Assembly (NCBI GenBank): GCA_002269645.1
Contig: NIVC01004900.1
Coordinates: 1 to 32,014, forward strand
DNA from: Macrostomum lignano
Lineage: Eukaryota
DNA: 32,014 nucleotides
Direction of reading: 5' to 3'
Positions 1-30,610 of this stretch are shown here, piece by piece. How positions within the stretch are numbered: the first letter of the stretch is position 1; every line of letters starts with the position of its first letter. The notes under the pieces were generated by a model that did no database searches, was not told the DNA's origin, and was given only the letters and a program-made list of their open reading frames with translations. The position numbers and the translations under genes are program-made.

Positions 1-1241
1 ATAGCTGAAGACATCGTTTTGGCCTGATGCGTCTCATTTTGAACGTAGATACCCTTTGGTCAGCATGTTTTTCACATAATTTCTGCAGATACGATCGGTA
101 ATCCTGACTAGTGTAGGCAGCCATCATGAGTACTACGAGAACAGAATGTAGAAAACGATGTCCTTCAAGATGTCGTTCATGTTGTTCTCACGGATTCTGG
201 ATGGTGATGTTAAAATAGCTGTAGTAGAAACTGTACATTAGTTTCAAAAATATTTGTGCAAACTTAAAAAGTTACAACGGTGAAATGGTGATAGAATTTC
301 CTTACCGCTGCTCCCGCAACTCCTCAGCACGTGCTCATCAGGCGGCGGAGGCGCCCGCTTCGACTTCAGGAACATCTCCCTCTTGCTGGGGTCGGTCAGG
401 TCCTTGATGCTCAGCCGCTCGTGCACTGGCGGGAGGCCCGCAGCGACCATCTCCTTCGTCACCTCGTCCTCGTCCTCGTCGATCTTCTTCACCAGCAGAG
501 CGTAGGCGGCGGCGATCACCACGATCTTCACGGCTGAATCAGCACGATCGACTGCAGCAAAGTGACAAGCATCGAGGCGAGCCACTCGGACGTCTTGGCC
601 TCGCCGAGAACTCCGCCGAACTCCACCATCAGATAGGTGCACGCGGCCACGCTGAGAAACGACAGGATGTAGCCGATGATGTAGGACCACCAAGGCAGAG
701 GCCACACGCGGCGCACGGCTGGGCGGATTCGAGCCAGGACTTTTGACTTGAGCGACTTTCCGGCGGCTTCTTCGGTGGCGACAGACGGTTCGCCAATGGC
801 ATACTTTTCACCATCCCAGCGCCGCTCTCTTCGTCAGGTGTGACCGCCGCGTGGCTTCACCTTTGAGGCCTTCTTCGGCTTGTTGCGTCTGTTTTTGAAC
901 AGCACAACAATGAGCACGTTAATCGGCAGGATGATCAGCGAGGACACAGTTGCCAGGTAGATGCTGTGAGCAGTGAGCTTTATCGGGCCGAACTCGATGA
1001 GTTGCGGACTCTCGACATGTTTTGACTGTCCGTAGAACATAAGGTTGACCATCATGGTGCTCATGACCAACACCAAGCAGGCTGTGGCTCGCTGGACTCT
1101 CGTGAACTTGCTCCTGGGAGACCTGGTCACCACCGAGAGCCACAGGTGGCCGTCGTTGAGGTTCTTCTGCGCCTTGCTCCAGAAGACGACTTCGAACTTC
1201 CTGACCTCCTCCATTCCGGACACGGGCAAAATCCTGTCCAC
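1..1241 (-). other. Polycystin-1 membrane region after PLAT (about TM2-TM6)
   Basis: HLWLSVVTRSPRSKFTRVQRATACLVLVMSTMMVNLMFY, PLPWWSYIIGYILSFLSVAACTYLMVEFG, and ENNMNDILKDIVFYILF(L)VVLMMAAY are typical PKD1-family segments. Confidence 0.85.
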
Positions 1242-4200
1242 CTGAAATTGGCACACTGATGTTGCGTCTCTGCTCCAGTGCAATGTCTACTCAATAAAAT
1301 GCTTAGCTTACCATTCCGTCATCCTCGTCAATGCGAACCAACGATTGCAGATAAAGAAGTACTTGTCTCCTGTCTGCAAATCTTCAACCAGCAATCGATT
1401 GAAGTACCACTTGGGATCTGAGCCGGCGTTGTCGTGCCAAATCCTGGCATGGGTGAGACGGCCGAGGTAGCTCGGAGTCGTCATGAAGAACGAGTCTACG
1501 CAGCCAGTTTGCAGAACGGGTCTCTTAGGATCAAGGACCGGCCGAGCCTCACTCTCCGAGTCCTCGCCGATCAAAGAGAATGACACCTGGGCGGTCGTGC
1601 CGGCGTGTCGTCTGGCGCCCGTCCAGAAAGTCAACTCATACCTGAGAATTTTAAACAATTATTGAATGTTTTAAAATTGCATAATTTTGATAACTTCAAG
1701 CTTTCATAAGATCAGTCGAGAGTCAAGCCTGTCCGTAAAGAAGAAGATAATAATTACTTACCTGAATTCGTCTGCCGGATGATTGTCTGGCAACGGCGTG
1801 ACGCCAACCTTCTTCATGTCGTCCTTGTCTTTTCTGCGAACCCAAACAACAATGATTAGGTAGAAACAGACCAGTGCCAGGACCACGCTCAGTGCGATCG
1901 GGTTGCTGTCCAGCTTCAGCCAGCCCGAGTCGGAAGGATTAAACGCCAACGGTGGCACGTAGAATGAAGACATAAACGAAGTCATGTGGCTGCTGAAGCA
2001 TTGCGTTTCAGTTGGCGTACTGCACTGACCGACCTGAAAAAAAAACATTTTCAACACGTATTTATAATTTGAGGGGTTATTGAAGAACTAAACAAAGTTT
2101 ATTCTGAAACGTTTTCATACATGAACGCCTATATTGCTAAACTGAGAAGAATTCGTGTCAAAATAATAACAGCCAGCCGTAAACGCTGTGCTCTTGAAGT
2201 CCATGCTTAGGTACTGATACTCTGGTATCTTGGAATTTTCGCTGTTGCCACTGCTGCTGTCACCATCTATAGTTTTCACGGATGGCTTTCCGTCAACGTC
2301 CAGTTTAATTGCTCGAATGCCGAAGTGGACGGTTTTTTCGACCTCGCGGCTGTAATTATAGTAAATAATATTCGCTTTGTATTGAAGTTATAATTATTAA
2401 AAGACATATAAGCATAAAAACACGTGCGTATTGAGATCGTCCACTGAAAGGTAGCAAGTCCACAAGTCAGGCTGATATGAATTCGACTTCTCGCAATTGT
2501 CTGTTGAATCCAAGTCGCTGTTTGGACTGCACCAAGTCGAGTTGCACATACAATTGGTCAGCTTATAGTCCGGTCCAGCTGGTACTGACGTCCCATTATA
2601 GTCAGTCAAGGGAGAGCAGAACCAACCCAATGTGCTGTTCCTACAGTTGCACGGCTCCTGTCTAAACTCGGAGCCCGAACTCGAGTCGGAGGCGTTAGAA
2701 GGTGCACTACACATAGTCGTTGCTGGCAGCGGCAGCTGGCACAGCCGGTCATAGGAGCTATCAGTGGGTGGCTCTCCCGCTTTAAAGTACACTAGGAAGC
2801 CGTAGTTCAATAAGTTCGTGGCCGTAGTTTCGTTGCGAGCGGTGGCGTCGGTCGAGTTCAGATATTGCTCAACTTTCACGAACAAGGCATTGCTGGTCTC
2901 CACTAGTACTTTCTGAGTTTGCAGAGTGACAGACTTGTCTGCTGTCTGTCCGTAAGTGCTGGGAATTGTCTCATTGTCCGCCATTATGTTAGTGAGCCGC
3001 ATTTCAATCCAAGAAGATGAACCGAGATCACTGATGTCATATTCCCCATTTGTAGAGGAGGACATGGTAATGGAGTAAGTGCTCGAGCTCATGTTTCCAC
3101 CGCCTTTGGCCGATGCGAACAAGTTTGACTTGCTTTTGATGACCTGAGATTTAAAAAGGCCTCGTGCAGTAGATGCCATGCTAAAATTACTTAAAGTAAG
3201 AAACGAAAGAGTCTTACTTTCGTCAGCGCTGACTGGGAGGGAACCGTTGTGTTAGGATTTCTCGGATCCGGTTCCACTAAGAGGCTGCTTCCGTAGCTAT
3301 CTTTGAAATCGCCGAGCTTGAAGTTGTCACATCCTGTTGAACCGCTGGCCTTGAGTTTTGCTGGAAGTTTAAAAAAGTAATAACTATGGCCTGTGTAATA
3401 GTTAAAAAGAATTTAAGCATTAAAGGTAAACAATGAATATAGTTTTTAGCGTACCATTATTCAATTTGCTTGGCTGCCGTTTCACGACCACAATGCTGAT
3501 GTTGGGAGTTGAAATATGCGTCTCCCGTTCATCCGTGACCATTTTGTTAGCCAAAGAATCGGCAGCGGTAATGTAATTGCCTAGCTGCTTGTTTCCAAGT
3601 TTTAGTTTGTTTGACGACTTGTCTTGGTTTCCTGCTCCGTTTTGCTCTGCGTTGTTAAGTGACGAGGTAATACTTTCGGAGGATGTAACTAGCCGATTCA
3701 CGCTAGCGAGAACTTCGTGGTACGACACGCCGCGCTGCTGCGAGATTTCAAGCAGATTTTTTGCCATATTTTTTGCCGTTTCAGCAACTACGTCAAGTGA
3801 ATCCTCGTCAAGTTCACCCTCAGTAATTGTGCTGAGCATTTTCGACTGGAATTCGAGGTCTCTCAGTCGATTGTCTGTCGTGGTGTTGCTATCAGAGGCG
3901 TTAACGCACTTTGATATCAGATTAACAACTTTGCGCTTGAATAGAATCATCTCTTGAACCTGAGCAGGTGTATCCACTGTTACAGTGCTAAGGGAGTTAA
4001 TGGCTGGGAACGCAGCCTTACCCATTTCACGAGAGTTTCCTCCGTAAGCGGAGCCTTCAATTCTGTTGTAGATGTTCCCATTGCTGAGCTCGTCAATGCT
4101 CATTTGTCGCTCCTTGACCCGTAGCAAGGTGGAGATATTATAGAAAGATGAAGCCATCGCTGCGTCAAACACCTCAATGCAGATAGTAATCATGTAGTCA

Positions 4201-7200
4201 CGCTTCTGAGAGCCGCTAGGTAGCATTGTAGCCTGGCTTAGTTTGCATTCATTTGCACCTGACAAGATAGCGGTATTCAGTAAATAAGATGACGTATTGA
4301 GCTATTTACTAATAGCGAAAATGCACTGCTCACCTATTTCAATCGGAATGCAGTCATCCGGTCCGCTTGGGTTCTCCAGCTGGCTGTAACCAATGTTGTA
4401 CTTTAGTGAGCCGTCGCTATCCGTGGCGCCGTCGCACGTAAGCTGAAATCTCGTATTCAAAGCTTCGCCAACGGTAGGAAAGGCTCGAACAGAGAGCAGG
4501 CTTACGTCTGGAGCAGTGTTGATCATCAAGTACAGCAGTTTGAAGCCATAGTTAGTTGGTGATCCATCGCGGTAGGACTTCACCCTGAGTATGTAGATGC
4601 CGTTCGATGCACGCGGCAGACAGCCGACTCCATCGATGGCAAGTCCCGGAGAGAAAATGCCTAAAATATCAGAATATTTGTTTTAATCTGAGTAAACTAT
4701 TTTAAGCCTTTTAAAGAAACTTTTCAACTTCTGTGGCAAACTTTACCTGTACTTGCACAGTTTTGGCCATCTAAAATTAAATATAGAAAGCATATATTAA
4801 TTTTTGTGCTCTTCCACGAAAATGCAACTGATTGATAGATAGCTATTTGATAAGTACTTTTATGTCCAATACAATAAAAGATGATTACCAATGATGCTCC
4901 AGTCCGGACCCATTTCATCCATATCTAGCTGGGCCAGGACTGAACTCTGCGACAGATCGTACGGACAAGATGTAACTGGCTTTTTTAAATTAGAAATCTG
5001 CCAGCGATAATGAAATCTCACGCCCGGAATGTAATTGTCAATCGATGTTTGGAATTTTATCGGAATGTTTGGGTTGATGTTGATGGCTTCATCTTCGCAG
5101 GCTCTTCCGTTTATCTTCGGGTTCTTAATGACGCTCCTGTGGCAATTGCTGATGCATCTAAAATTACAAAGGCACACCGTAGGGTCAGACAATGTCATTG
5201 CTAAATAAGTAATGCAAAAAGCAAGCTTACATGTCAGTTATAATTGGTGGCATTCCAAGAGTAAATGTAGCGACTACATTAGTGATCTGTGGTTCCAACG
5301 ATGGATCGTTTTTATCCCGCACAACAACATAAATTCTGTGGCTTTGCTTCTCAAATGTTGTCAGAGTGTTCAAAATGAGACTGGAATCAGATCTTTGACC
5401 AGACATGTAATACAAGTAGCGGTATACTTTTTTGCTTATGGCGTCATCTTTCCATTTTTTGAAACTCGGAATGTCATAAACATAATCCATTTTTCCTGCT
5501 CCACCCGAATAGTTCCAATCACCTTTAATTATGCGAGAAAGATGATGTCTAGTCTTCAGAGGATCCAATGAAAAACACGTTAGGTTATGTACCACGTCAC
5601 CATTCATGTTTGTCTTGTTGCAGACATTCTTCGGCTGGTTTGCAAAACTGTACGAGGCATCGGGACCGAAGATGAGTTCTCCCTCGCACTCGCGGTTGCA
5701 GTAGTACTCAAAGTCCCAGTCACTGAACTCTCCAGCCAAGGCGAACTTGTTCGGATTGACGCTGCAGCTCGCGTCGAACTCCACCTCGAAGCCGAACTTG
5801 CTCTGCGCAGGGCTGCTCAGCTTGTACCACCTCGAGAGCTCTTGGTCATACACTCTGTAGCTGAGACATGGTCGCAGAGGCGCCTTGTAGATGTAAACAT
5901 CAATCGAGTCGGTTGTGTTCAGGGCGGGCTCTTCGACCATCGTGGCCTGTACAGTGATCCTGTACACTGTGTGGATGTTGAATGCATAAGGAAACACAGT
6001 GAAAGTCTTGAGTTGGTTGTTCGATCCTTGGTACATCACTCCGGATATCATCGTATCGTCCAGAGCAACATAGTTTACATGACTTGGGTAGTTCTGATGG
6101 AACTGCTTCAGCTGTGGTAGGAAGTCTTGCCATGCATTGGTGCCGTTATTGTATCGCTCGATTTTCCACTTCACTTCGACACTGTTATTGTAGCAGTTGA
6201 CACTGAGGTAGGGGTTAAAGACGAGAAGTTGGTCTCTTGAAAACCGCGGATCCGGCATCGAGTACGAGAGATTGAGCTTCGGCTTTGAGCACGGCCCCTT
6301 CGAAACTACCATGTAGAAGGAAGTCTCCTGCATGGAGTACTTGTTGTAGCCTTGCAAGCGAACAACCTTTTGGTCAAAATACGTAAAATTCTTGATGAAA
6401 AGAACGACTGTAGACACAGGAGGACTCGTCAGCGACTCTTGGTAGAGCCTGTTGTACTCTTGCGAAAGTTGGTTGTCCCAGTACATGCTGCCATATAGAG
6501 AGCTCACTGGAGACAGAGTTTGGCATGCGGTGGCACTGCCAAACATGTGAGCGCTCTGATTGGCTACAACTTTGTCACCAAAGGCGCTAAAGTCCACAAC
6601 AAAGCAAGCTTCTGCAGGAAGTGTTCCCAGATCGATGAACACTTCGTATGGCTGCATCATCGATGCTGTGATTTCTGCTCCAATCTCGAGCTTATCCACT
6701 GGTCTGTAGACACTGATGTTTACTGACGCGAAAGCAGTGCTGTACGCATGGGAAACATTGACTTTGATAAGATAGCTTCCTTCTTTTGCATACTGATGGC
6801 TGACTGAGTTAGTGCTGGATTCAGTGCTGATTCCGTCACCGAAGTCCCAGGAATACTTTAAACCTGGACCGCTACCGAACTGCATTGTGGCAGTGAAGGT
6901 CACAGGCCTGTTTCTCGGAAAATACCGTTGCGAAACCCACGCGGACATTCTGGGATCGGCAGCAACATCGGGGTGAGGCACAGCGGCCACTTTAGGTCCC
7001 ACAATCAATGCAAAAATGGAGATGTTGTGTGTGATTTCCTGGAGTCCGATGGGTTTAGTGACTCTGACGGTGGCAGTAAAGTCTCCCGTCCAGCTGTATG
7101 TCTGAGGTGGAAACAGGTAACAGAAGATCAGACTGGGTTCGATGCTTGAGCAGGTAGTGTTTTGAGCTGATGTTCCCGTATTACAAGTTGTTAGTCTAGT

Positions 7201-10200
7201 GGGTCCAGTCACACCACTCGAATCGCCCTTGTCGATGGTCACATCACCCAAGTACAGATTCGGCTGTGATGTGTAGTTTGTGCTAGCACACAGAATGAAG
7301 TTCGGATCCGTGATATTTGATGAGCTCATGTCGATGAGTCCAAGTTTTAGAGCCGAGATCGCAAATCCGAACGGTACCAACAAGATTTCGACCGTTGTTC
7401 CTTCAAGTGTGATAGTCTCCGAGCTCATTTTGTTGGTTACTCGGGCGGTGACGGTGAAGTTAGCAGAAGTCAAGTAGGTGTGATTGACCAGCACCGAGTG
7501 TTGTCGACCCTCAATAGTCATGTTCGCGACATTCCCATCTCCGAAGAAGACCTCGAGCTCATAATCGGAGCCCCAAGTAACGGAAAATTGGAAGCTCATG
7601 ACTTGGTCTGTGAGTCCCACGCGAGCGAAGGCAAGCAGCTTCGGATTCTGTATTTGTTCCTGCACAGTCACGCGACACTGAAAGCTGAAGTTGGAAACTC
7701 GATTCCACAGAGTTCCATAGATGTCATATTCTCCGTAGTCAAAGCTTCGAGCTTCGGAATGCGTTGGATCAGACTGGGTCCACGTGAACTGAGTTGAGAC
7801 GTTTGCGACATTGATGACATAGTAGTCGAGGTGAACGTTGCTTGGAATAAAGTTTGCATCTCCAGTGTAGTTAAAATTGAAGCTTGTACCTGCACCCGCA
7901 GCATTTGGAAACAAAGGCAGGAACCTATTGCAATCTACAGTGGCGTTGTTTTGGTTCAGAGGGTGCTCGATTTGGATGATGACCTGAAACGAAATTATAA
8001 TTAAGCTATGCATGTTATGCATTGATCTGGAATGCATTAATTTTTTACTTACGGATGGCAGTTCCTGCGTAGATATATAGTTCGATGCGGTACATCGGAC
8101 AGCAAAGCTGCCATCGATGTTGTACACGTGACTGAAGCTCTTGCTGCCGCTGTGCAATATTGGCTCACCATCGGAGAAGTTGCAGGCGTATGTTGGTCTA
8201 CTGCCCGCATGAGCTTGAACTTGAAAATTAATCGGAACTCGAGATTGGGCTGAAGTGAAGTTTTGGTGTCGGTTTTTTTATTTATCAAGTATTTCTTAGG
8301 TTTAAATTCATAATACGAGTCGTATTTCGCGGCCTCTTACACAACAGCGTGCTCGCAACAATAACTGCTCCGGACACAGGAATCTGAACAGTGACTGTCT
8401 TGGCAATTAATTGGTTGCTATTTCCTACATTTAGCTGGATTGTATAGTTTTGATCCAATGAGCAGATCGATTCATTGGAGCAGAAGCTATCGTTGTACAC
8501 CGTGGACAGGATCATCCGGCTTTGCCTGTAGCCAAACAGTTGTACGGCCAGGTCTCCGCCCGGACTAGCTGTCGGAGAGATCGTTAAGACTCCGCCAGAG
8601 TCAACATTATTCAAAATATCGTTTGTTGGCCCAGCCTTTTCAGAGAGTCCGATAGTCGAGTCTTGGATGCCGACAATGTCTCCGGGTAGAACCTCGAGGC
8701 GATTTGAGCCATTCAGATTTACTAAGTTGAGTCCTGGAGTAGCTGTGATCGCGACGCTGTTCACCAGTACATAGGTTCCGGCAAAGAGGGGTGAAACACT
8801 TCGGGTCACCTGTCCGGTTGTGAGGTTTACGCACGCCCTGTTAACTAAACTCCATTTGCTTCCGCTTCCGCAAGCGCTGGCTCGGACGGTACCGTTGCAC
8901 TTTGAAGCCAGCGGAATGCAGGCGTTGCTGTAGTAGCAGTACTTTGCCACGTTGGAACACATTGGTCGATATTGAATCACCTGGAAAATTAAAGATAATG
9001 ATATATAAAATTAACATAGATGCGCATTTGCTCTTACGTGATGTATTCTATTTCATGTTAAATTTACTCTGCTCTTTTTTATTATACATAATAAGCATTT
9101 TTTTACCGTCCACTCAATCATCTATATACTACTTATAGTACAGTTTTCTTGTGCTTTTGCGTTACACACACTTTGCTTTCCAAAAATGATGCATGCATGC
9201 CGCACAAATTTTCATATTGTTTCGCACATCCTTTAAAATTTTTACTATTGCGCTTGTAAACAAAATTCAAGAGCCTCGTGTCCCTATCTTTGAGTCCCTT
9301 GTGTCAATCTAGCAATTCGTTTTATTATGGTGACTACTCACATAAATTTGAAAACTGGATCCCGAGAACGTGTGAAACTGAACCTGGGTGACTGTGGTTG
9401 GCTGCTTAAAGTCGAATTCGCGAAGCAAAACAACCGGTGAACTCGAATTGGCAGTTCTTGTCCTGAGGGTGCCGTTGCCTTCGTATTCTTGCAGGCTGAG
9501 CTTGCGAAATGTTCGGGCCATGGGTTCTAGGAAATTTTAAGAATAAAAACATGGAATTTTATGTTTGGGTTAGGCGAGTTCTACCCAAAGTTTTCTGTTT
9601 TTTTTCAATAAAGTTCCTAAAAAGTGTTGAAAATTGTTATTGAAAACAATAACTTTAGTAATTTGCAAAAACAAATGATTTTAAACATATTTTTCGTCAA
9701 AAAACTTTATCGATAAACATTTTAATAGACTTTCATTCACTACGTTAATTTAAAAAGGTATTAACTTTTGTTTCACCAAAGTAGACACCTTTACTAGGAC
9801 TAAGAAATTTTCTTCGTCCTATTTTATTGATGGACTTTCGCGATAGCAGCTAGCACATATTAGTTAATATTTGTTGCAAGAATACTCAAGAAAACGCCAA
9901 ATGTGCCGCTATAACAAATAATTTTTATGACGCAAATTTGTCTTGCCGTTAATATAAAAAGGGGCAGTTCGTTAGCGTACAATAAATGAAAACTCTTAGC
10001 GCCTGTTTAATGGATCATTGCCAAACACTGTCATTAAAATATAAATATTGAAGGAAGCCAATAAGAATGCATCTTACCAATAAAATTTTCCAATGTTTTA
10101 ATCTCGCCGTTGCCGAAGTCAACTAGCACGGATTGATTAGTGCCAAGGTTGATGCTGGCAACAACTTCCACCTGGGTGCGGATCGGCACAGCCTTGTACA

Positions 10201-12100
10201 GGTTGCCGCGGTAGTCGATTTCGAGTTGCACTCCCTCGAGTCGCTGGTAGGTTTGCACTACTCTAGTTTTGTGCAGCTGGGCTACGCTGGAGCTGGTCAC
10301 AGCATGGAGCACGTATCTGCCGTCTAAATGGGCAGTGACAGTCAAGAGTAAACGGTAGGTTACACTGTCAATTGGCGAATTTCATTACTTTACATAAATT
10401 TTTATTTACGCAACTTTGCTCAAAAACTTGGCCATTTGACTGCTAGTTGTCATGGTAAATCATACATATACGAAACAGCAGTATCCATGGTATTTCAAAA
10501 AGTGGTTATGCACACAAATCGTTAAATCAAGAGTTTGACAGCCTTAAATCCTAGATCTTTACTGGGGACCACCTGGGAAAGGCTTGTACCCTCTCTGTGC
10601 CTTGAGGGTTGGTCCTCATTGGTGTGAATCAATGTCAATGTATGAGTATTTCAAGCTTCATTATGGTGATTCATGACATCCCTGCGCCTATCTGATTCCC
10701 ATTAGCAAACAAATAATTTATTTACTTTCTCATTATTGTGCTTTGCATGTCTTTCAGTCTTTTCTCTTAAATTGCACTACCCAACCAAGGCAGTCAGTCA
10801 GTATGCGTGTGTACTAACGGGCTCACCTGAGAAGGTTGGCCTAGCTAGAATCCCAGAAAAATTGGCTGGCACAGGTTGCTCGAGTAGCACAGAGCCTGTA
10901 GCGGCTCCAGTGGCCAGGAACGGATCGTGGTCAACAATTCTTCCGAATACGCCGCTAACATCGGAGCCGATGGAGGCCGCCATGATGTCCTGGACGGCTT
11001 GCTCACTGTTTGGACCAGTCGGTGCTGTTTAAAACAAATATACAAATCCTGCGTATTATTTACAATTCCAAGGAAAATAGCTATAGCGATACGGAATGTG
11101 TATGTATCTACAATTGTATCAAGGGACAACAAGAATTAGTCGGTTTTTTCAGAGTTCACAAGAACATCTATATAGGTCAAAACGTTTTATGATGCTGGCG
11201 TGAAGACAAACACAGTCTAAAAGTTCTAAAGAATAGTGTTTCATTCTTCGGTAGATTTTGATCGTGAAATGGTTGTGGATACACCGGATAAAGGTTGTTT
11301 GCTTTCAAGGGGCTTGGGCGCTCACATCTTTGCACTCGTCAGGCTAGTATACTCGTATATACACAGTCTGGTTCAACCCTCACGAGTGCATATTACCCAA
11401 TATAATCTTTTCTTGATAAACAAGGCTACAATGAATGAGATATTTATCAAGGAACATGGTCCTTTGCATTTGCTACTTTTTAGTGTTGTTTCGTAAAATT
11501 TGAGTTTAAAATTTCGAGTTTACGTCAGTTTTCACTTTTATCTATAATTCCAATAATATTGTCCGTTTAACTCAGCGTAGCACAAATACCGTCGGAGACG
11601 CTCAAATCCATCTTGGTCGGAACAATTTCGGTTGGCACGATGGAGTAAAGCATCATCTGGGAATTCCAAGTCACCGATTCGCACTCCTGAGTTGTTGGGC
11701 CGCAGGTCTCAACGCATCCCGTAACGTTTGCGCTCGGCAAGTTGTAGCCGCAGAAGCAGAGGGATGCGTGAACTCCAGCGTAGCTGCATTGACGAGAATG
11801 GGAAAGCGACCCACTGTACTCATCAGCGTGCCTAGCTCGCATCTCTTAGCGTGTCTCATTGTCATCTCTTAGCGTGTCTCCCTGTCATCTCTTAGCGTGT
11901 GTCACTGCCATTTCTTAGCGTGTGTCACTCCCATATCTTAGCGTGTCTCACTCACGTCAAGCTGCGCGCCCACAGTGCCGCATCAACCTACATGTATTTG
12001 CTCAACCCCGATCGCGTTTATCTCCATCGATTTATACTTCCTAACTAAGTATTCACATTTCCTTGTCACTTCATCTACGTTAATCCAATAAATTAAAATA
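1..12100 (-). CDS. Polycystin-1-like (PKD1/PKD1L family) multi-exon gene; 3' end beyond window start, 5' end uncertain
   Basis: Minus-strand ORFs join through GT-AG introns (e.g. 197-305, 1242-1311, 1642-1761, 2034-2120, 3181-3217, 7985-8052). Domain order is WSC, PKD (WDFGDG), REJ, GPS (CFSSHMTSF), TM1, PLAT, TM2-3 (GHLWLSVVTRSPRSKFTRVQR), further TMs. Several 1-bp frameshifts are needed to keep the frame. Confidence 0.93.
1312..1641 (-). other. PLAT/LH2 domain exon
   Basis: YELTFWTG...AGTTAQV...IGEDSES...G.VDSF...LG.L...RIWHDNAG.DP.WY...V.DLQT...FFICNRW matches the PLAT consensus; flanked by AG and GTAAG. Confidence 0.92.
1762..2349 (-). other. GAIN C-terminus / GPS motif and TM1 (two exons, 2121-2349 and 1762-2033)
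   Basis: AGCYYFDTNSSQFSNIGVH|VGQCSTPTETQCFSSHMTSF, then PIALSVVLALVCFYLIIVVWVRRKDKDD. Confidence 0.88.
3218..6330 (-). other. REJ module and GAIN N-terminal region
   Basis: GPCSKP, FDASCSVNP, DICISNC, INTAP...V.AFP..GEALNTRFQLTC and LKYNIGY motifs lie between the PKD repeats and the GPS. Boundaries are approximate. Confidence 0.7.
6400..8250 (-). other. Array of PKD (Ig-like) domains
   Basis: CNFSDG...SFSHVY, VFFGDG...VNHTY and YSWDFGDG...VSHQYAKEGSY, plus divergent copies. Another partial copy (VDFGNG) lies at ~10075-10365. Confidence 0.85.
8880..8980 (-). other. Cys-rich motif resembling the PKD1 LDL-A-like segment
   Basis: RPMCSNVAKYCYYSNACIPLASKC has Cys spacing similar to my recollection of human PKD1 C..GGRWC..ANICLPLDASC. 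Confidence 0.5.
11590..12100 (-). other. WSC-like domain exons (11590-11783 and ~11956-12100)
   Basis: YAGVHASLCFCG...C...C...C fits the WSC core. The donor GTATTT at 11589 is phase-compatible with the next exon (10827-11024). Confidence 0.65.
11841..11955. repeat. Intronic 23-bp minisatellite, 5 copies
   Basis: Units ATCTCTTAGCGTGT(C/G)TCxxxxxx in tandem with period 23. Confidence 0.9.
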
Positions 12101-15384: not shown

Positions 15385-15832
15385 CTATAGACATTTTCAG
15401 CGGGCCGTGAAACCGACTGAATATATTGGAGTAAATGGGATTTTACCATAGACAGTCTCAGCGGGCCGTGAAACCGACTGAATACATTGGAGTAAATGAG
15501 ATTTTACCATAGACAGTCTCAGCGGGCCGTGAAACCTACTGAATACATTGGAGTAAATAGGATTTTACCATAGACAGTCTCAGCGGGCCGTGAAACCGAC
15601 TGAATGCATTGGAGTAAATGGGATTTTACCATAGACAGTCTCAGCGGGCCGTGAAACCGACTGAATACATTGGAGTAAATGGGATTTTACCATAGACAGT
15701 CTCAGCGGGCCGTGAAACCGACTGAATGCATTGGAGTAAATGGGATTTTACCATAGACAGTCTCAGCGGGCCGTGAAACCGACTGAATACATTGGAGTAA
15801 ATGGGATTTTACCATAGACAGTCTCAGCGGGC
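15385..15832. repeat. 61-bp tandem array, about 7.3 copies
   Basis: Unit CATAGACAGTCTCAGCGGGCCGTGAAACCGACTGAATRCATTGGAGTAAATGGGATTTTAC, starting at 15447, 15508, 15569, 15630, 15691, 15752 and 15813, with a diverged first copy near 15385. Confidence 0.97.
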
Positions 15833-15960: not shown

Positions 15961-16830
15961 TATATTTTGCTTTTCTCACGCAATCGTGGAGTTTCTAGTA
16001 CAGAGATTTCTTGACGACCACAGAGAAACACGTAGACTTGGAGTCCTGACTTTACTCAGCCGGCAAGGGTGGCGCATTGGGAATGAAAATCTCGTCCTTT
16101 TTCAACTTGAATCAAACAGAATGCTAGTGCATTTATTTCAAGCTTAAAAGTTAAAATCTGTACCTCATTATTTAAATTTTAAGAGCTTGGTAAGTTAGCT
16201 ACTTCTCTCTTGAGCTCTACATCTAGATCTCCTTAGACCCGAGGTCGCTGTAAACTGCGTCACCGACCCCAGCCCGTCCACTAGTTTTCTTATTTCCTGT
16301 GGCTGAGCAGGTCTGGCAGGATGACTTTGGCGTCGCCTGCCATGCAATAAACCTGAACAGCCTACAGTGGCTCTCATTCTTGGGCTCTCTCTCTCTCTCA
16401 CCCTCTCTCCCTGTCTCGCTCGCTCTAGCGAGAAGCAGCAAAGACCAGGGATAGGGGTAGAAAAGGCAAATCAATAACGACAAGACTAACGAAGACTGGG
16501 CTCACACGCCCCGGCTTGCATATTCTCTTGTCAAGTGCGTGCTATGAGGAGTTGACAGTAAATTTTGTTTGTTTCCAGAGCCTTACTCTTTGTTTCTATG
16601 GTTACGAGGGCTCTTAGAGTCAAAGACTATCTCTTAGAATGGGGTGGGAGAGGAGGTCTATAGGGGGTCGGAGTTGTGACTTACTGCTTCTATCTTTTCA
16701 GTTTCTCATCTCAATGGCAATGACGAGCTTATACTGGGAACAGAAGCGCTAAAAATTAAGTAGCTTACAGAAACTGCTTCAGGTAACTTTTTATTTATGC
16801 GTCAACTATCTTCTTTTAATAACTGCTTTC

Positions 16831-17348
16831 TGAGGGATGCTTGCTGTCTGGGGGATGCTTGCTATTTGGGGGATGTGTTGCTATCTGGGGGATGCTTGCT
16901 ATCTGGGGGATGCTTGCTGTCTGGGGGATGCTTGCTGTGTGGGGGATGCTTGCTGTCTGGGGGATGTTTGCTGTCTGGGGGATGCTTGCTATCTGCCTGG
17001 GGGATGCTTGCTATCTGGTGGATGCTTGCTATCTGGGGGATGCTTGCTATCTGGTGGATGCTTGCTATCTGGTGGATGCTTGCTGTCTGGGGGATGCTTG
17101 CTATCTGGGGGATGCTTGCTATCTGGTGGATGCTTGCTATCTGGGGGATGCTTGCTATCTGGTGGATGCTTGCTGTCTGGTGGATGCTTGCTGTCTGGTG
17201 GATGCTTGCTGTCTGGGGGATGCTTGCTATCTGGGGGATGCTTGCTCTCTGGGGGATGCTTGCTGTCTGGGGGATGCTTGCTGTCTGGGGGATGCTTGCT
17301 ATCTGGGGGATGCTTGCGGTCTTGGGGATGCTTGCTATTTAGGGGAAT
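16831..17348. repeat. 18-bp G-rich minisatellite, about 28 copies
   Basis: Unit ATGCTTGCT(A/G)TCTGG(G/T)GG; it produces spurious LGDACY/GGCLLS/WGMLAI ORFs in all three plus frames. Confidence 0.97.
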
Positions 17349-17604
17349 GCCTGTTATCTTTCTGAAGGCTTTATTTTGTTGTCATTTTGTTACTTTAAGA
17401 AAAAAAGAGATTCATAGCGAACGTCTTTGTCCGTGACAATTAATTTTACTAGAATAAAGTGATTTATAAAACTGAAGAAGGAATTGGTTCTTATGAAAAT
17501 GTGCTTTTGTAATCTACTTGTATGAATAATCTTTGCTCCTTGCTTATTGGGGAGCGCACTAGATTGCTAGTTGTATCGAAATCTAGCTGGTTAACTGAAT
17601 TGTT

Positions 17605-20059: not shown

Positions 20060-24020
<3,961 letters not shown>

Positions 24021-24676
24021 CTTGAGAGAGTAAGTAAGAGTTCAGTGCTTTTTATATGGCCAACTTGTTGACAAAGTGAGTCAGCGCTTGTAAAAGAATT
24101 TTCAAGGCAAGTGACAATGACATCTATCTCGTAAGATTGCTATGGAAACCGAAATATCAAACTGCAGCAGTCACAGTCACAAACTATACTTTTTGTTTGA
24201 TGATTGTCAATATATATTTTGTTAAAGTTTCTCAGTTTTAGTTTTTAATTTTCATGCTCCACAGTTGCTCTATCTAAAAAATGGGAGCTGAAAGTAAAAA
24301 CATCTACCCAGACTCCTAAAACAATTCTAAAAAGCAACAATGCTACTTATTTTTTGCTTCTACCATGCTGTGAAAACGAGTGAGTTGCACGTATAGCTGA
24401 CTTTTTGCAAAAGTGATTGACAGCTCCCAGCTCAAAAAACGTTTTTTACAACACCAGATTATACACTTTTTCCAAAGCTGAAACAATGTGGAGTTATCTA
24501 TCTAATGCTAAACTGCTTTGAGATGCAATCAACTTTCAGACAACGTTTATTCCAGAATTTGTGTTAATTCTTCAAACAGAATAGAAGTATTTTCCCATTA
24601 ATCTTTAGTGTCTTTGCAATTGTTCTTTGCACTCAATATGTTTGTACACTTCAGTGCAGTCTTTTTTCTAAACAAA

Positions 24677-26762
24677 TCAGCGAAAGGTAAGCGGACGAAC
24701 TTCGTCAATTTTCAGTTGCAGTATCCAGGTTGTCGGAGCGAACTTGCTGCTGCTGGCCAGGTCGATGTTAGCCGCCAGTCGCCAGCCCTTAGAGATCAGA
24801 GCGTCGAGTAGCGCTGCCACAAGTCCCAGGCCTTCGATGGTGACGTCCGGGTTGTCCGCGTGCCACTGCCAGGGCTGGTCAGTGAAGTTGAACCCGATCA
24901 CCCAGCCGCTGTTAGACTCGCTGAGCTCGCACTGCTGACTGCGAAACCAGGAGTCGCGAATTTCGTTAGTCAGCTTGTCTTTGAGCTCCTCGGTGGCGCC
25001 CATCACTAGCAGGTGGCTCGACTCGTGGATGGCCACGCTCAGGTGCGGCTGCACCAGGGTGTTGGAGCAGCGACGCAGTACCATCAGGCTCTTGTCGTAT
25101 GCGCTGCGATAGATATCGGCCTGTAATAATGAGCATTCGCTGTAGGTTTCTAGCACTAAATTCGATTTATATGAAGGCGACGAACGATCTAAACGAAGAC
25201 TATGACTTTATTTGCTAGGATTTCTTAATGACCAATTGCGTTTGCCGAAAGCTTGCTACAAGTGTTTCATTTAATCCAAACAAACATGCCTTAGCTACTT
25301 ACATTGAGCACAATAGTCCAGCCCATGCTGCAGATTTCCTTGAGCAGCTCCATTACCAGTTCACAGGCTCTCACAGATGTGTCCTGATTCCAGGACTGGA
25401 TGAACCAGGGCGATGATTTCAACTGAATTCGGCTCATTCGATCAGGGACAGCCTCCGAAGACTCGGAGCGCAGACAGCCTGGGGCCCAGTGCTGACGGCA
25501 GATGCTGACGGTCTTGGTGACAACCTCGTCTGGAGCGTCGTACAGACGGATTTGATCGCGCTGATTCAAGCTGACAATCATGAGCTCACCGTCGGCGCTG
25601 CAGCTACATGAAGTTATGCCAGAGGGTTATATGATTTTATCTAGAGATTTAACAGATTCGGGGTTCAACTACCTTCATTTTTCTAAAGTTTTTGCTTAGT
25701 TTTCAAACCTAAGATAGTCAAGGTTCCGATAATTACGAGTATTCAGTACAAGCAACTCTGCTTCTATTGCCTCAGGCGCCCGACGGAAAAGCCAGCCGAC
25801 ACTGAGCTCTGGATTTCCCTGTTTTTGCTCTTGTGCCGTTCTTAATCAACTTTGTTGCTGATGTGAAACACTTTATTAATTTTTCTTTACTGACGGTTGT
25901 GAGACTAATGTCTGGTCGAACCTTTCATTTCATTAAAAAAATCACAAACCCCTGCGTCGTCTTGAGGAACGTCAGGCAGTCCATGTTACCCCGAGCGTGT
26001 GTCGCGGCCAGGAACTCGTAGCCGTAGTTGGCCAGAATTTGCACCAGGACGAGCACAATCAACGGGCCCCGTTCGCCGTTCTCTTTATAGCTGTCCCAGG
26101 GCTGGCCGTGAAGCTCAGCCGCGAAGCTCCTAGGCTGGTCGATGGCAACAGCACTGCCCTTCGGCCAGATGTCCTTTAGTTGAGCTGCAATCTCGGAGTT
26201 CACACCCTCAGGCGCGTTCACCACAAGAAGGCGGCCCCAGTCTTCAAAAGCGACGGTAAGTAGGTTGCCACCGGCTCCACCTTGAATTGCCGTCTCTATG
26301 CGGCGCTCTCGATCGTCATCGACAGCATTGAACACCCAGGAGCTGCGACAGGTGCCTTGTAGAAAAATTCCACTGGCAACCAGACTGCAACCAGCTTTCA
26401 GAAGCGCTGTGAGCAGCTGGTTTACAAGCCTGTAGACGCTCATCAGACGGTCTATGGGTTGGACCTGGCAATTTACATAAACAGATCTTAGATATACTGT
26501 TTTCCTTAACGTTACTGATGAAAATTATTGTTCTCACCTCCGAGTCAAATGGCTCTTTGTCCAGTCGCAGCTCGAAGCCCAACGAGAACTTCTTTTCAGA
26601 CCGAACTCCCGGCGCCCAGCAGTAATGCACGGTGTCGCGCACCAGCTTACCAATATCCGTCGGGGCGTGAATCACCTGTAAAATGTCCGGCTGGCGAAAT
26701 CCCACCACGAAACTGCTGGTTGGAAAAGCTCGGCCTTTGATGCGAGAATACTCGTTTCCCAT
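24677..26762 (-). CDS. Uncharacterised 494-aa protein with four tandem ~105-aa repeats; exons 26538-26762, 25950-26464, 25303-25603, 24677-25120
   Basis: All three introns are GT-AG and phase-consistent (225+515+301+444 = 1485 nt), with no frameshift. Starts MGNEYS. Each repeat has hxVxh..hxhxxA(P/T)..W...P(W/F)...L...G(W/Y/C). Confidence 0.88.
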
Positions 26763-29282
26763 GTTCAATTTGTGGATTTGAATCGTAGAAGAAAAATCGC
26801 AATAAAAACGATCAGTTTAATTGTTAAAATGTAGAATTCCAAATTTTGAATGTAGATTTGGCGAGCTGGCACTGCACAGAGAGTCAAACTGAGAAGTAGC
26901 TCGGCTCAAGAAATCTGTTTAGGACTACTGAACTGCTACCTTTTTATCTGCACCTTCCCGGTTTCCTTAGTTCACCTCCCCCTAGCTGCCACGCCCTGAA
27001 TTCTTCTCCAGGCGAGGTCCGCCTCTTTTTCATCGGTCCGATTGCCTGAGCTTTCTGCTTCAGCTCAGGACACGCCCCAATGAGCTTTAATAAATCCCTA
27101 TAGCCGCCTCGAGAAAGGTTTTGTTTCGGGTAGAGTCGATGCCGCTTCTAAAAGAGCTGCAACCGATACAGCATAGAAATAGCATGGGAGCTAAGAATTT
27201 CTTCTTTGTTTTCTGCTTGTCGAAGCATGCAAGCGTACCCTCTCGCCTGCCGGGTGTAGCCACTAGACGTAGAATTTGGTGTTTTAAGCCGGTCCCAAGC
27301 CCGGCCTTTGTCTCCGTCGAGACTAGCCACAATAATACGAATATACTGTATTGCCAGGTAGAAAAGTACTCAAAATTGTCCGAATAACTCCGTCAGTGCA
27401 CCATGATCAGCTAACGGGTCCTACCCGATTGCAGATTTCTCTCGATATTGTAGATTTAACTTGGTAGCGATATACGCACTTAATTATTTCGTGAAGAAAA
27501 AGACGTACACAAATCAGTTAATTCATCGCTTGACAAGGTTAAAAGAACTGCAGACGTCTATTTTCTCTATTGCACTATTACTCACATGCGTAGAACGTAT
27601 CTTTGGTTTATGAAACTTTTTCAGTTGAGCTTTCGAACTTTGTCCTATCTTGAAAAATAACGAAAATTAGGGTCACGAACCCGGTTTTACGCAATTAGAA
27701 AGCTAAACTTTTAGAGATTTTGCGGGGGTTGGGATTGTGCTTTTTAACTGCCGCTTTTAGGTGATTAACCAATGCGGAAAGCCGTTTTTGCCGAGCCAAA
27801 CTGGCTCTCCATAGATATTTTTCTAGTCAAGTGAATTGCGCAACGAGAATAAACTGGGCAAAGCAATTAGGGCTGGAAAGAGGTGACAAGGACTGTGCAG
27901 TCGGAGCTCTGCGGAATTTCTGGGCCAGCTGTTGCTAAAGACTCTCACAAGCAGGTCTGTGGGATATCCAGCATTCTTCATTTCTTCTTCGAGCTACTGG
28001 TATTAGGCAGTGAATTGCCGGGCAAAGAATATGGCCGCGATAAAAATTTACGTGACAAGCTTCGGATTTTTCTGTCGGGTTACCCATACACATGGCTTGT
28101 TACTAGCTCGGTCCAGTTTTAGTACCGCGCTTTTCGACAAAAAAGAGACCATATTTTGAAAGCCCAAGGAACCTGAAACGGGAAGGAATGGCTTCTTTAA
28201 GTTTTCCCACTTGCAGCCAGATATCTACCAGACATATTACCGACATAACCGATGAAAAATGTTGCCCTAGTAGCTAAACCGAGATATATCCTACAGTAGA
28301 GTAACTCTAACTACATACATTCGGTTTGTTCCACATTCGACGAAATCTCGCAATTCATCAAGGAATTTTTCTTGCCCAGTGATAGTTATGAGATACAGTA
28401 GCAGTAGTTTTACAACCAGCACATCGTTAGGGCACCATTAATTTAGAATGACTTTCCTTTTCGTAGGCCGTATTATATAGCCGCTTCTAACACGCACCTA
28501 GCTTTATATGTATGGGCTACAGCATGCACAAATTCCCAATCTGTGGGCCTGCAAGTCGAAGGAAAATCCCGCGCATATCTCTCCACGCGGCAGAATATTT
28601 TTTCTTTCCCTCAAAGATAGAAACGGCAGCAAGGCCTGCACCTGATGCTGAAACTGACCCAGGCATGCGACGGCACCCCTACTGGGGGGGGGGGGGGGGG
28701 TAACACGCGGACGAGTTGCTGGTTCAATACAATGGGAGGCTGCTAGGCTGTTCAGTCCGCAGCCAGTTTGACCTCCTCTGTCCAGTTCTAAGACGGCGGG
28801 CGCCGCAAGATGAAGTGTCTGCGTGGGAAGCCAAGGCAGCCTAAGGTCGGCCGGCAATACGAGATCCTGCATCTAAGAAATAAGGCCTTTCAAAGCGGAA
28901 GCGCATAAGGAACCAGCAAGCCTGATGTTCTGCACAAAACCGTTTCTAACTCCTCTGCCCAATTAAGCTTCTGATCCTGCTGGCCTTTTGCATTCGCGCG
29001 AAGGCCTGCTGGAGCTAAATCAAAGGCACAAGAAAGTTATTGGTCCTTCAGCTGCAGCCAACAGTTTCCGCTTGGAGAGAGAAAAGTGCAACGAGCGGCG
29101 GTTCGCCCGTCGTCACTTCCAACCCAAGAGATATCTATTCCACTCGATTGAATATTGGCAAACCGCTGATATCCCATCAAAACCTCATCCCCTGGTCTTA
29201 CCTCATATTATAAGACGGGCCGGTTGATATTTGGCCGATGAATGAGAAAGAAATGACCAAGCCCAGCTTCCTTACAGGAGCG

Positions 29283-30610
29283 ATGAAGCCCACTGACTGG
29301 CTACTACCAATTGCGTTAGTCTGGCTAGTGCGGTTTTCCACTGCGCTTACAGACACAGCGATCAACTTTACAATTCCATTCGAGACCTCAACAGCTCCGC
29401 CAAAGGACAGCATTTGCATCTGCAGTATCAATGTGTCTCAAGGTCGTCGCTGCCTGGACTGCCGACAATATCAACTCGACTCACCGGACCTTGTGTTTCT
29501 GAGCTCTCGCAACATCTTGCTGAGGGCTCCGGTATGCAGTGGAGTCACCAGCATTAGAGCTGAACAGCCGGTGCGAATTCATCAGCTCCGCCCAGGTCGC
29601 CTGTTGCAGATGACGGGCCTGATCAGCATCCGGTTGCGCCAAGTTGACTTGAGATTCAGCTTTCATCCGGACGCATTGAGAGGGCTCAAGAATCTTACTG
29701 ACCTGGAGATAATTGGGCCGCACAGCCTTGACAGGCTGGAGGCGCACAGTTTTCAGCACACTCCCAGACTTAGGCGATTGGTGCTCAGAGACAACGGCAT
29801 TAAGTACATCGATCGCTTTGCTTTCTGTGAGGCGGAGAATTTAGAGTACTTGGACCTGAGCAGGAATCGAATAGTTGCGTATTCGTGCGACTGGTTCCCG
29901 GGCCTGTCTGCTCTGAAGTTTCTTAACGTCACTCTGCTCACTGGCACAGAGGTATTTGCTAGCGTGGGGACTAAGCCACCAAGTTGCCTGTTCTGCCGTT
30001 GACGGGTCTGGCAATATTGTCTTTTAATGATATAAACTACGCCGGACCAAGCATTCAGCTGCTGAGGCATGCAATTATTAAGCACTACCGCTTGCAGTTG
30101 CTTGAGCCGCTGTTGTACAATGTTACTGGCTTGCGAGATCCTCAAACTTGCGGAGGCCTCGACGGAGAAGCGGCCATCGCCTGGCAGCAGTGCCAAAGAT
30201 GGCGTGACGGCAAACCTGTGGTGGCCCAGTACGTGACTATGGGGCCGAGCACAGCTGCCGTTAGCAGCACCGCTAGCCCAGCAGAGGAAGTCTCCGACTC
30301 GAACGGTGTGATTCAAAGCCCGAACGAATACTTCAACAACAGCTCATCTCGACAAATTCCTGACACGAGTTCCGGCGATGGGCTTCAAGTGTTTTTAAGC
30401 AGTCAATTGTTTCTCGTGGTGCTTGTCGTGTGCATCGTCCTTGTGGCCTTGTCGCTGATCATCTGCTGCATAGCCTGCTGCTTTGCCCGATCGCGCAGAC
30501 ACCGCGGCGCTCGCTACAGTGTCAAAGCTGCCAACGAAGCCGCCGCTGCCGCCGCTGCCGCCGCTGCAGCTGGCAACGGGAAAGCCGCAAATGGTAGAGC
30601 AAATGCTTGA
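29283..30610 (+). CDS. Intronless leucine-rich-repeat type-I membrane protein, with one -1 frameshift near 29977
   Basis: Signal peptide MKPTDWLLPIALVWLVRFSTA, Cys-rich cap (CICS..CLDC), LRRs (LRRLVLRDNGIKYI, LEYLDLSRNRI), Ser/Thr stalk, TM LFLVVLVVCIVLVALSLIICCIACCFA, basic stop-transfer RSRRHR, and an 11-Ala tail. ORFs 29238-30002 and 29984-30610 join if one C is restored. Confidence 0.85.

Follow-up and report, generated by a model that had tools for sequence, protein, structure and literature searches.

A Macrostomum lignano protein of four fused domains with a predicted N-myristoylation signal: an unnamed eukaryotic family and its likely relative in kinetoplastids

Within a 32,014-nucleotide stretch of the Macrostomum lignano genome (contig NIVC01004900.1 of assembly GCA_002269645.1; this whole stretch is referred to as the window), a four-exon gene at 24677-26762 on the minus strand encodes a protein of 494 amino acids (aa) that is composed of four copies of one domain and starts with a predicted N-myristoylation signal. 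The protein belongs to a sizeable family which is widespread in eukaryotes, unnamed, uncharacterised and not covered by Pfam, and in which a predicted lipid anchor is combined with four fused domains. Its units are probably homologous to the Trypanosoma cruzi protein Q4D6Q6. On balance, we lean towards the reading that the product is a myristoyl-anchored, single-chain pseudo-tetramer serving as a scaffold or adaptor on membranes or vesicles. Since the structure of a probable homologue of the domain has been solved, the protein does not represent an entirely new category; the fold of the domain is known through Q4D6Q6, and the new element is the four-fold fused, putatively lipid-anchored form in an unnamed eukaryotic family.

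The 1485-nt coding sequence (CDS), starting with MGNEYS, is formed by joining four minus-strand exons, which are listed here together with the polyadenylation signal.

26538..26762, minus strand: exon 1, codons 1-75, start codon at 26762-26760, donor GTGAGA.
25950..26464, minus strand: exon 2, codons 76-247, ending in phase 2, acceptor ..TTGCCAG, donor GTTTGT.
25303..25603, minus strand: exon 3, remainder of codon 247 to codon 347, donor GTAAGT.
24677..25120, minus strand: exon 4, codons 348-494 and the TGA stop.
24546..24551, minus strand: AATAAA polyadenylation signal, 125 nt 3' of the stop.

The three introns measure 73, 346 and 182 nt and all three are bounded by GT..AG; their GC content is 30-38 %, against 57 % for the CDS (69 % at third codon positions, GC3). 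The nearest 5' in-frame stop is located at 26817-26819, and ATG is absent between this stop and the start codon. The closest relative is the M. lignano hypothetical protein BOX15_Mlig031497g1 (referred to as the orthologue), which is 50 % identical over 99 % of the length. Its alignment is free of gaps across two of the three junctions (75/76 and 347/348), and its gene carries an intron at the same position as the third intron of the present gene. A pseudogene or a mis-assembled gene model would be an extremely improbable explanation of these observations, as every exon has an open frame, every intron has canonical splice sites, the CDS and the introns differ sharply in GC content, the flatworm orthologue is similar along its full length with one intron position in common, and relatives are found in transcript-like contigs as uninterrupted open reading frames (ORFs) of 894-1569 nt. 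As read from its sequence, the four-exon gene is real, intact and probably functional, and the claim of an intact gene with a 494-aa product, made in an earlier note on this DNA, is upheld.

After trimming of 44 residues of apparent 5' read-through, BOX15_Mlig031497g1 starts with MGNDYS, and the Met of this motif is probably the true start. The gene lies at NIVC01000406.1, 10001-16137; the deposited model, in which the 44 residues precede the conserved MGNDYS, is marked partial. Its neighbours are a calpain and a DUF4730 protein, without synteny to the window. In a word-indexed homologue search, with the single protein as well as with a 37-sequence profile, BOX15_Mlig031497g1 was the only match.

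The segments of the protein are listed below, where the units are defined by the secondary structure of the AlphaFold2 (AF2) models and by a hidden Markov model (HMM) of the unit.

26324..26714, minus strand: unit 1, residues 17-122, across intron 1, element order bbabbabb (b, strand; a, helix), AF2 secondary structure and HMM E 6e-21.
26264..26323, minus strand: linker between units 1 and 2, residues 123-142, with a short helix; the sole long low-confidence internal segment.
25961..26263, minus strand: unit 2, residues 143-243, AF2 secondary structure and HMM E 3e-20.
25070..25584, minus strand: unit 3, residues 254-364, across intron 3, AF2 and HMM E 1.5e-27.
24713..25045, minus strand: unit 4, residues 373-483, AF2 and HMM E 6e-19.
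24680..24712, minus strand: C-terminal tail, residues 484-494, short, of low confidence and without PPxY.

The unit HMM, whose training set included the window protein's own units, locates the units at residues 15-122, 142-244, 252-366 and 371-482. The linker between units 1 and 2 has about 20 residues, and the other linkers have about 8-10 residues each. When the units were compared with one another by hhalign, two-sequence profiles gave E 1e-3 to 1e-6, and family profiles of 37 sequences gave a probability of 99.8-99.9 % and E 1e-29 to 1e-34 over ~100-110 columns. The reversed-sequence controls for the latter comparison were at E 0.007-0.19, and the repeat is therefore far beyond chance. The intron positions are not equivalent between the units, and thus the repeat is an old one and not an exon duplication still visible in the gene. 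The four alignable units noticed earlier are borne out by the comparison between units, by the unit HMM and by the element order, which was found four times in both structural models.

AlphaFold2 produced a mediocre model from two sequences (predicted local distance difference test, pLDDT, 68.5; predicted template modelling score, pTM, 0.77) and a confident model from the 37-sequence alignment (pLDDT 88.9, pTM 0.89, 364 residues at 90 or higher). For both models, DSSP assigned the order strand-strand-helix-strand-strand-helix-strand-strand (bbabbabb) four times. At a pTM of 0.89, the mutual packing of the four domains is predicted with confidence. When both models were compared with the Protein Data Bank (PDB) by Foldseek, T. 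cruzi Q4D6Q6 (6XYB/6XYD) was matched with a probability of 1.00 and a target template modelling (TM) score of 0.58-0.63, the superposition covering the whole 106-residue chain (106-124 columns) at a root-mean-square deviation of ~3.8 Å. It was the only PDB match with either model that combined a high probability and a good target TM.

The earlier note had likened the units to GFRP/KCTD-H1-like folds. This comparison drew some support from low-ranked Foldseek matches of the model with pLDDT 68, namely KCTD1 (6s4l_D, probability 0.75) and the H1 domain of KCTD12 (6qzl_E, probability 0.51, target TM 0.48), and it lost that support with the model of pLDDT 89, where KCTD and GFRP were absent from the best 50 matches. 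The KCTD C-terminal/H1 domains and GFRP resemble the units in being small alpha+beta domains with a helix-Gly-aromatic-strand ending that assemble into closed oligomeric rings, and the strand-helix order of GFRP is similar to that of the unit. They are pentamers, in contrast to the four units fixed in the present family, and no sequence signal to them was obtained in PDB searches with the single sequence or with profiles. That the protein is a member of the GFRP/KCTD-H1 family, regulating a partner such as G-beta-gamma or GTP cyclohydrolase, is consequently regarded as highly improbable.

Other Foldseek matches of low probability included ACT domains, engineered ferredoxin folds, MurA/EPSP synthase and EF-G. 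Those of the ACT and ferredoxin types (TM 0.1-0.3, probability <0.55) are a resemblance of fold class alone, without sign of a ligand-binding site, and MurA/EPSP synthase, efflux pumps and EF-G (TM ~0.1, probability <=0.4) were rejected as generic multi-domain alpha+beta similarity. Five consecutive chains (FQ-FU) of the T. brucei mitoribosomal small-subunit assemblosome (6sga/9hny) match one unit; they were set aside at a Foldseek probability of 0.57-0.95 and a target TM of only ~0.3. A homopentameric factor, mt-SAF24, is described in the assemblosome in a preprint. Raftlin, which is lipid-anchored and has a helix-GW-strand arrangement, was rejected because the comparison, with a provisional query sequence, gave a 15-residue helix-GW motif alone at 1.4 bits. 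No meaningful match was found in the viral structure library.

At the sequence level, the PDB search with the single sequence gave a chance-level match to 3pjv alone. With the full-length family profile, 6xyb was the first of three matches at E<=10 (E 0.066; the others E 0.7 and 1.1), and with a profile of 80 units it was the sole match (E 0.078, residues 25-117 of 119). Four trypanosome orthologues (P0206-P0209) were retrieved via a stretch of Q4D6Q6 and aligned as comparators for homology. Against these kinetoplastid orthologues, hhalign gave 79 % and E 1.6e-5 for the pooled units, and 83 % and E 8.5e-6 over 107 columns for the profile of unit 4 (R4), with reversed controls at 0.03-0.34. The order of motifs is also the same in Q4D6Q6 and the units: P-x-L-C-V-S in strand 1, P-x-G following helix 1, (N/G)-P-x-x-W following strand 4, G-W closing helix 2 and F-F within the final strand. 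MPNLCVS is the start of the kinetoplastid orthologues, and a strand of the similar form P-x-L-C-V-S opens many of the internal units in the four-unit family. Taken with the structural match, these results make homology between the units and Q4D6Q6 likely. The earlier note could not assign a family, and the family is indeed unnamed and absent from Pfam; the domain is not entirely isolated, since a probable homologue has been crystallised and its structure solved.

In the crystal, bbabbabb monomers of Q4D6Q6 assemble into a propeller-like homotetramer, and the same tetramer is predicted for the T. brucei orthologue Q586B2 (PMC10899635). Q586B2 is located in vesicles (endosomal and exocytic), with partial overlap with RAB5B, RAB11, RAB2B, glycosomes and acidocalcisomes, and it has been reported to have tautomerase activity, to be released and to induce interleukin-10 (IL-10) in host macrophages (PMC10899635). 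In UniRef, P0206-P0209 are labelled 'paraflagellar rod component', which differs from the vesicle location given for the T. brucei protein in the 2024 paper. The window protein and the Q4D6Q6/Q586B2 group share the bbabbabb topology and, as proposed for the window protein, four units per assembly; the structural match between them is the best found, and the kinetoplastid protein is vesicle-associated. They differ in that the kinetoplastid proteins are single domains of ~116 aa, encoded by four separate paralogous genes, which form non-covalent tetramers, have a Met-Pro start without a lipid signal and have reported tautomerase and immunomodulatory activities, whereas in the window protein, which starts with MGNEYS and carries a myristoylation signal, four diverged units are joined in a single chain.

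In the tautomerase superfamily, the catalytic group is a free N-terminal Pro1. The kinetoplastid MPN start would leave such a Pro1 once Met is removed, and this, along with the activity reported for Q586B2 (PMC10899635), would favour the view that the window protein is a tautomerase as well. Its N-terminal residue is Gly2, which is predicted to be acylated, and the Pro preceding strand 1 in many units is internal; moreover, no typical catalytic-site residue stands out among the near-invariant positions of the family. Because a free N-terminal Pro is needed, and here an acylated Gly is expected with the equivalent Pro internal, catalysis of the tautomerase type is considered very unlikely.

Relatives of the window protein were collected by searching 1.84 billion cluster representatives exhaustively with HMMER, which yielded 295 at E<=1e-3 and 106 at E<=1e-10. 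The names of the 15 taxon-named clusters were all hypothetical, uncharacterised or evidently transferred. Members were found in flatworms (Macrostomum with several paralogues, Taenia and Hymenolepis), nematodes (Anisakis, Steinernema and Plectus), cnidarians (Rhopilema and Actinia), a copepod (Lepeophtheirus) and diplonemids (Lacrimia and Rhynchopus), and many further members are transcript-like contigs from sequencing runs. Fungal, insect and vertebrate members were not encountered among the 30 clusters inspected. The earlier note had mentioned similar repeats in both fungi and invertebrates; the invertebrate part is confirmed here, while no fungal relative was present among these 30 clusters. 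The number of units is exactly four in 70 of the 77 relatives of 440-600 aa, according to the unit HMM. One relative, P0081, has 1038 aa and eight units, that is, two complete sets of four, which indicates that the unit number changes in steps of four.

No Pfam match was obtained for the window protein, its single units or BOX15_Mlig031497g1, even at E<=10. A Pfam scan of 37 relatives detected DUF4177 in only 4 of them, at E 7e-4 or weaker, and a scan of ten long relatives gave isolated matches in single members and nothing useful. Membership in DUF4177 was rejected, as the window protein itself is without a match at that permissive threshold. The earlier view that the protein falls in no named family agrees with these scans, which are blank for the window protein and gave only weak or isolated matches for its relatives. 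In the full-length alignment, Ser6, Trp198, Gly310, Gly341 and Pro430 are near-invariant and Phe241 is invariant. These Trp, Gly, Pro and Phe residues are of the kind expected for fold stability, and Ser6 belongs to the putative myristoylation motif.

The N-terminal signal is as follows.

26742..26762, minus strand: MGNEYSR, N-myristoylation consensus on Gly2 (PROSITE PS00008), followed by the basic residues R7, K9 and R11.

The PS00008 pattern, G-{EDRKHPFYW}-x(2)-[STAGCN]-{P}, was anchored on Gly2. An MG start is present in 66 of the 150 listed relatives, 53 of these 66 having Ser6; of the 87 relatives with a length of 440 aa or more, 50 start with MG, and the pattern fits 45 of these 50. In the alignment of 37 full-length members, Ser6 is retained by at least 90 %. 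The consensus that had been read at the start of the protein is thus confirmed by the fit of MGNEYSR to PS00008 and by the conservation of MG and Ser6 in the family, and we infer N-myristoylation on Gly2. A different role, that of a soluble or unconventionally secreted signalling protein, could be proposed after Q586B2, which is released and acts on host macrophages through IL-10. The conservation of the MGxxxS start across phyla argues instead for lipid anchoring in free-living animals and protists, and the immunomodulation by Q586B2 is parasite-specific; a secreted protein in place of a membrane scaffold is accordingly quite unlikely.

Some relatives carry an additional C-terminal motif. PPxY or LPxY occurs in the last 120 residues of 23 of the 87 long relatives, mostly in the last 20 residues, and PPxY is enriched 13-fold in the C-terminal tails as compared with the rest of the sequence. 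Carriers with a Pro-rich tail include P0005, P0007, P0013-P0017, P0041, P0048, P0052 and P0053. PPxY is the ligand of WW domains of the NEDD4 family, and from these motifs the tails of the relatives would be expected to recruit NEDD4-type WW-domain ligases. The arrangement may be compared with that of membrane-bound or lipid-anchored PPxY adaptors of NEDD4-family ligases, such as arrestin-related adaptors and NDFIP, and of some retroviral Gag proteins, in which a myristoyl group and PPxY follow the same logic. Approximately one quarter of the relatives resemble them in having an N-terminal membrane anchor, an oligomer-like body and PPxY ~10-50 residues from the C-terminus. Their folds bear no relation to that of the units, and PPxY is missing from the window protein and from its flatworm orthologues; the likeness may serve as a works-like analogy for the relatives and not as a statement of membership. 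The branch of the window protein (Macrostomum, cestodes and some transcripts) is divergent and without PPxY, and neither PPxY nor LPxY was found anywhere in the window protein.

In the mechanism that we propose, the product would be co-translationally N-myristoylated on Gly2 and placed on the cytosolic face of a membrane, where R7, K9 and R11 may add an electrostatic contribution to the attachment. Within the chain, the four units would pack into a closed pseudo-tetramer that corresponds to the tetramer of Q4D6Q6. The resulting platform, rigid and lipid-anchored, would offer partner proteins binding surfaces on endomembranes or vesicles. The fixed copy number, with four units in most full-length relatives and eight in the 1038-aa member, fits a closed assembly, and the vesicular location of Q586B2 together with the PPxY tails of many relatives points to a role as scaffold or adaptor. 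Ring-like packing and scaffold function are both suggested on these grounds. A pseudo-symmetric, membrane-associated ring had been conjectured in the earlier note; the idea of such an assembly of four fused units gains support from the Q4D6Q6 homotetramer, the constancy of four units and the pTM of the confident model, while ring geometry and lipidation continue to be presumed.

The main alternative is an open array, in which the units would be independent beads on a string and the resemblance to Q4D6Q6 would be confined to the level of the single domain. The linker between units 1 and 2, which is long and poorly predicted, is compatible with such an array. The pTM over 494 residues and four domains indicates fixed inter-domain packing, the other linkers are short, and a unit number fixed at four or eight in the family is unusual for open repeats; we therefore consider the open array unlikely. 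Several points nevertheless weigh against a closed, lipid-anchored scaffold. Myristoylation of the window protein is a consensus prediction. The sequence evidence for homology to Q4D6Q6 is marginal alone (PDB E ~0.07; hhalign <90 %), and the homology stops short of proof, as none of the sequence statistics is more than marginal by itself. A pTM of 0.89 denotes defined packing and not a ring. The window protein is without PPxY, so the functional hint is not directly applicable to it.

A previous tBLASTn survey found four stable paralogues of the Q4D6Q6/Q586B2 family in Trypanosomatidae and Bodo only, with 'no other eukaryote supergroup' represented (PMC10899635), and this group, published as kinetoplastid-restricted, has been proposed as a target against trypanosome disease. 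Four fused units in one gene occur in diplonemids, which are sister to kinetoplastids, and in several animal phyla, and these genes challenge the statement on supergroups. If the homology holds, the family, including the virulence-associated T. brucei Q586B2, would not be kinetoplastid-specific, and the four kinetoplastid paralogues may stem from fission of a four-unit gene and may co-assemble. We offer only tentatively the further idea that the four-unit myristoylated protein was an ancestral eukaryotic membrane or vesicle scaffold which predated the split of animals and Euglenozoa, was retained as a single gene in diplonemids and animals, and was split on the kinetoplastid stem into the four single-domain paralogues of trypanosomatids and Bodo. 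If this were true, the assembly that kinetoplastids form under physiological conditions would be a heterotetramer built from the four paralogues. The family would in this way be linked to the only solved structure of its fold, with an ancestral membrane or vesicle role suggested, and free-living Macrostomum, cnidarians and nematodes would be tractable organisms for its cell biology.

Two other genes were recognised in the window.

240-8980, minus strand: polycystin-like gene with very long exons, running off the left end of the window.
29238-30610, plus strand: leucine-rich-repeat (LRR) gene, LRR_8 E 3e-17, containing a hydrophobic segment and a poly-Ala tail.

The polycystin-like gene includes an exon with a PLAT/LH2 domain (1311-1658, E 2e-19) and a 976-aa exon with PKD domains (5230-8157, E 1e-26). 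The LRR gene and the four-unit gene are transcribed divergently, the start codons of the two being ~2.4 kb apart. An Rfam scan of the window gave no match. Several repeats are present as well. At 16824-17359, ~29 copies of an 18-bp unit (90 % matches) give rise to long spurious ORFs in three frames (repeats of CLLSGG, WGMLAI and GDACYL) and to a strong skew of GC/AT in the 17-18 kb bin. A 61-bp tandem repeat at 15387-15832 has 7.3 copies with 96 % matches, a perfect (CTA)43 microsatellite at 22406-22533 encodes poly-Val in one of the minus-strand ORFs, and at 11825-11953 there are ~5 copies of a 23-bp repeat.

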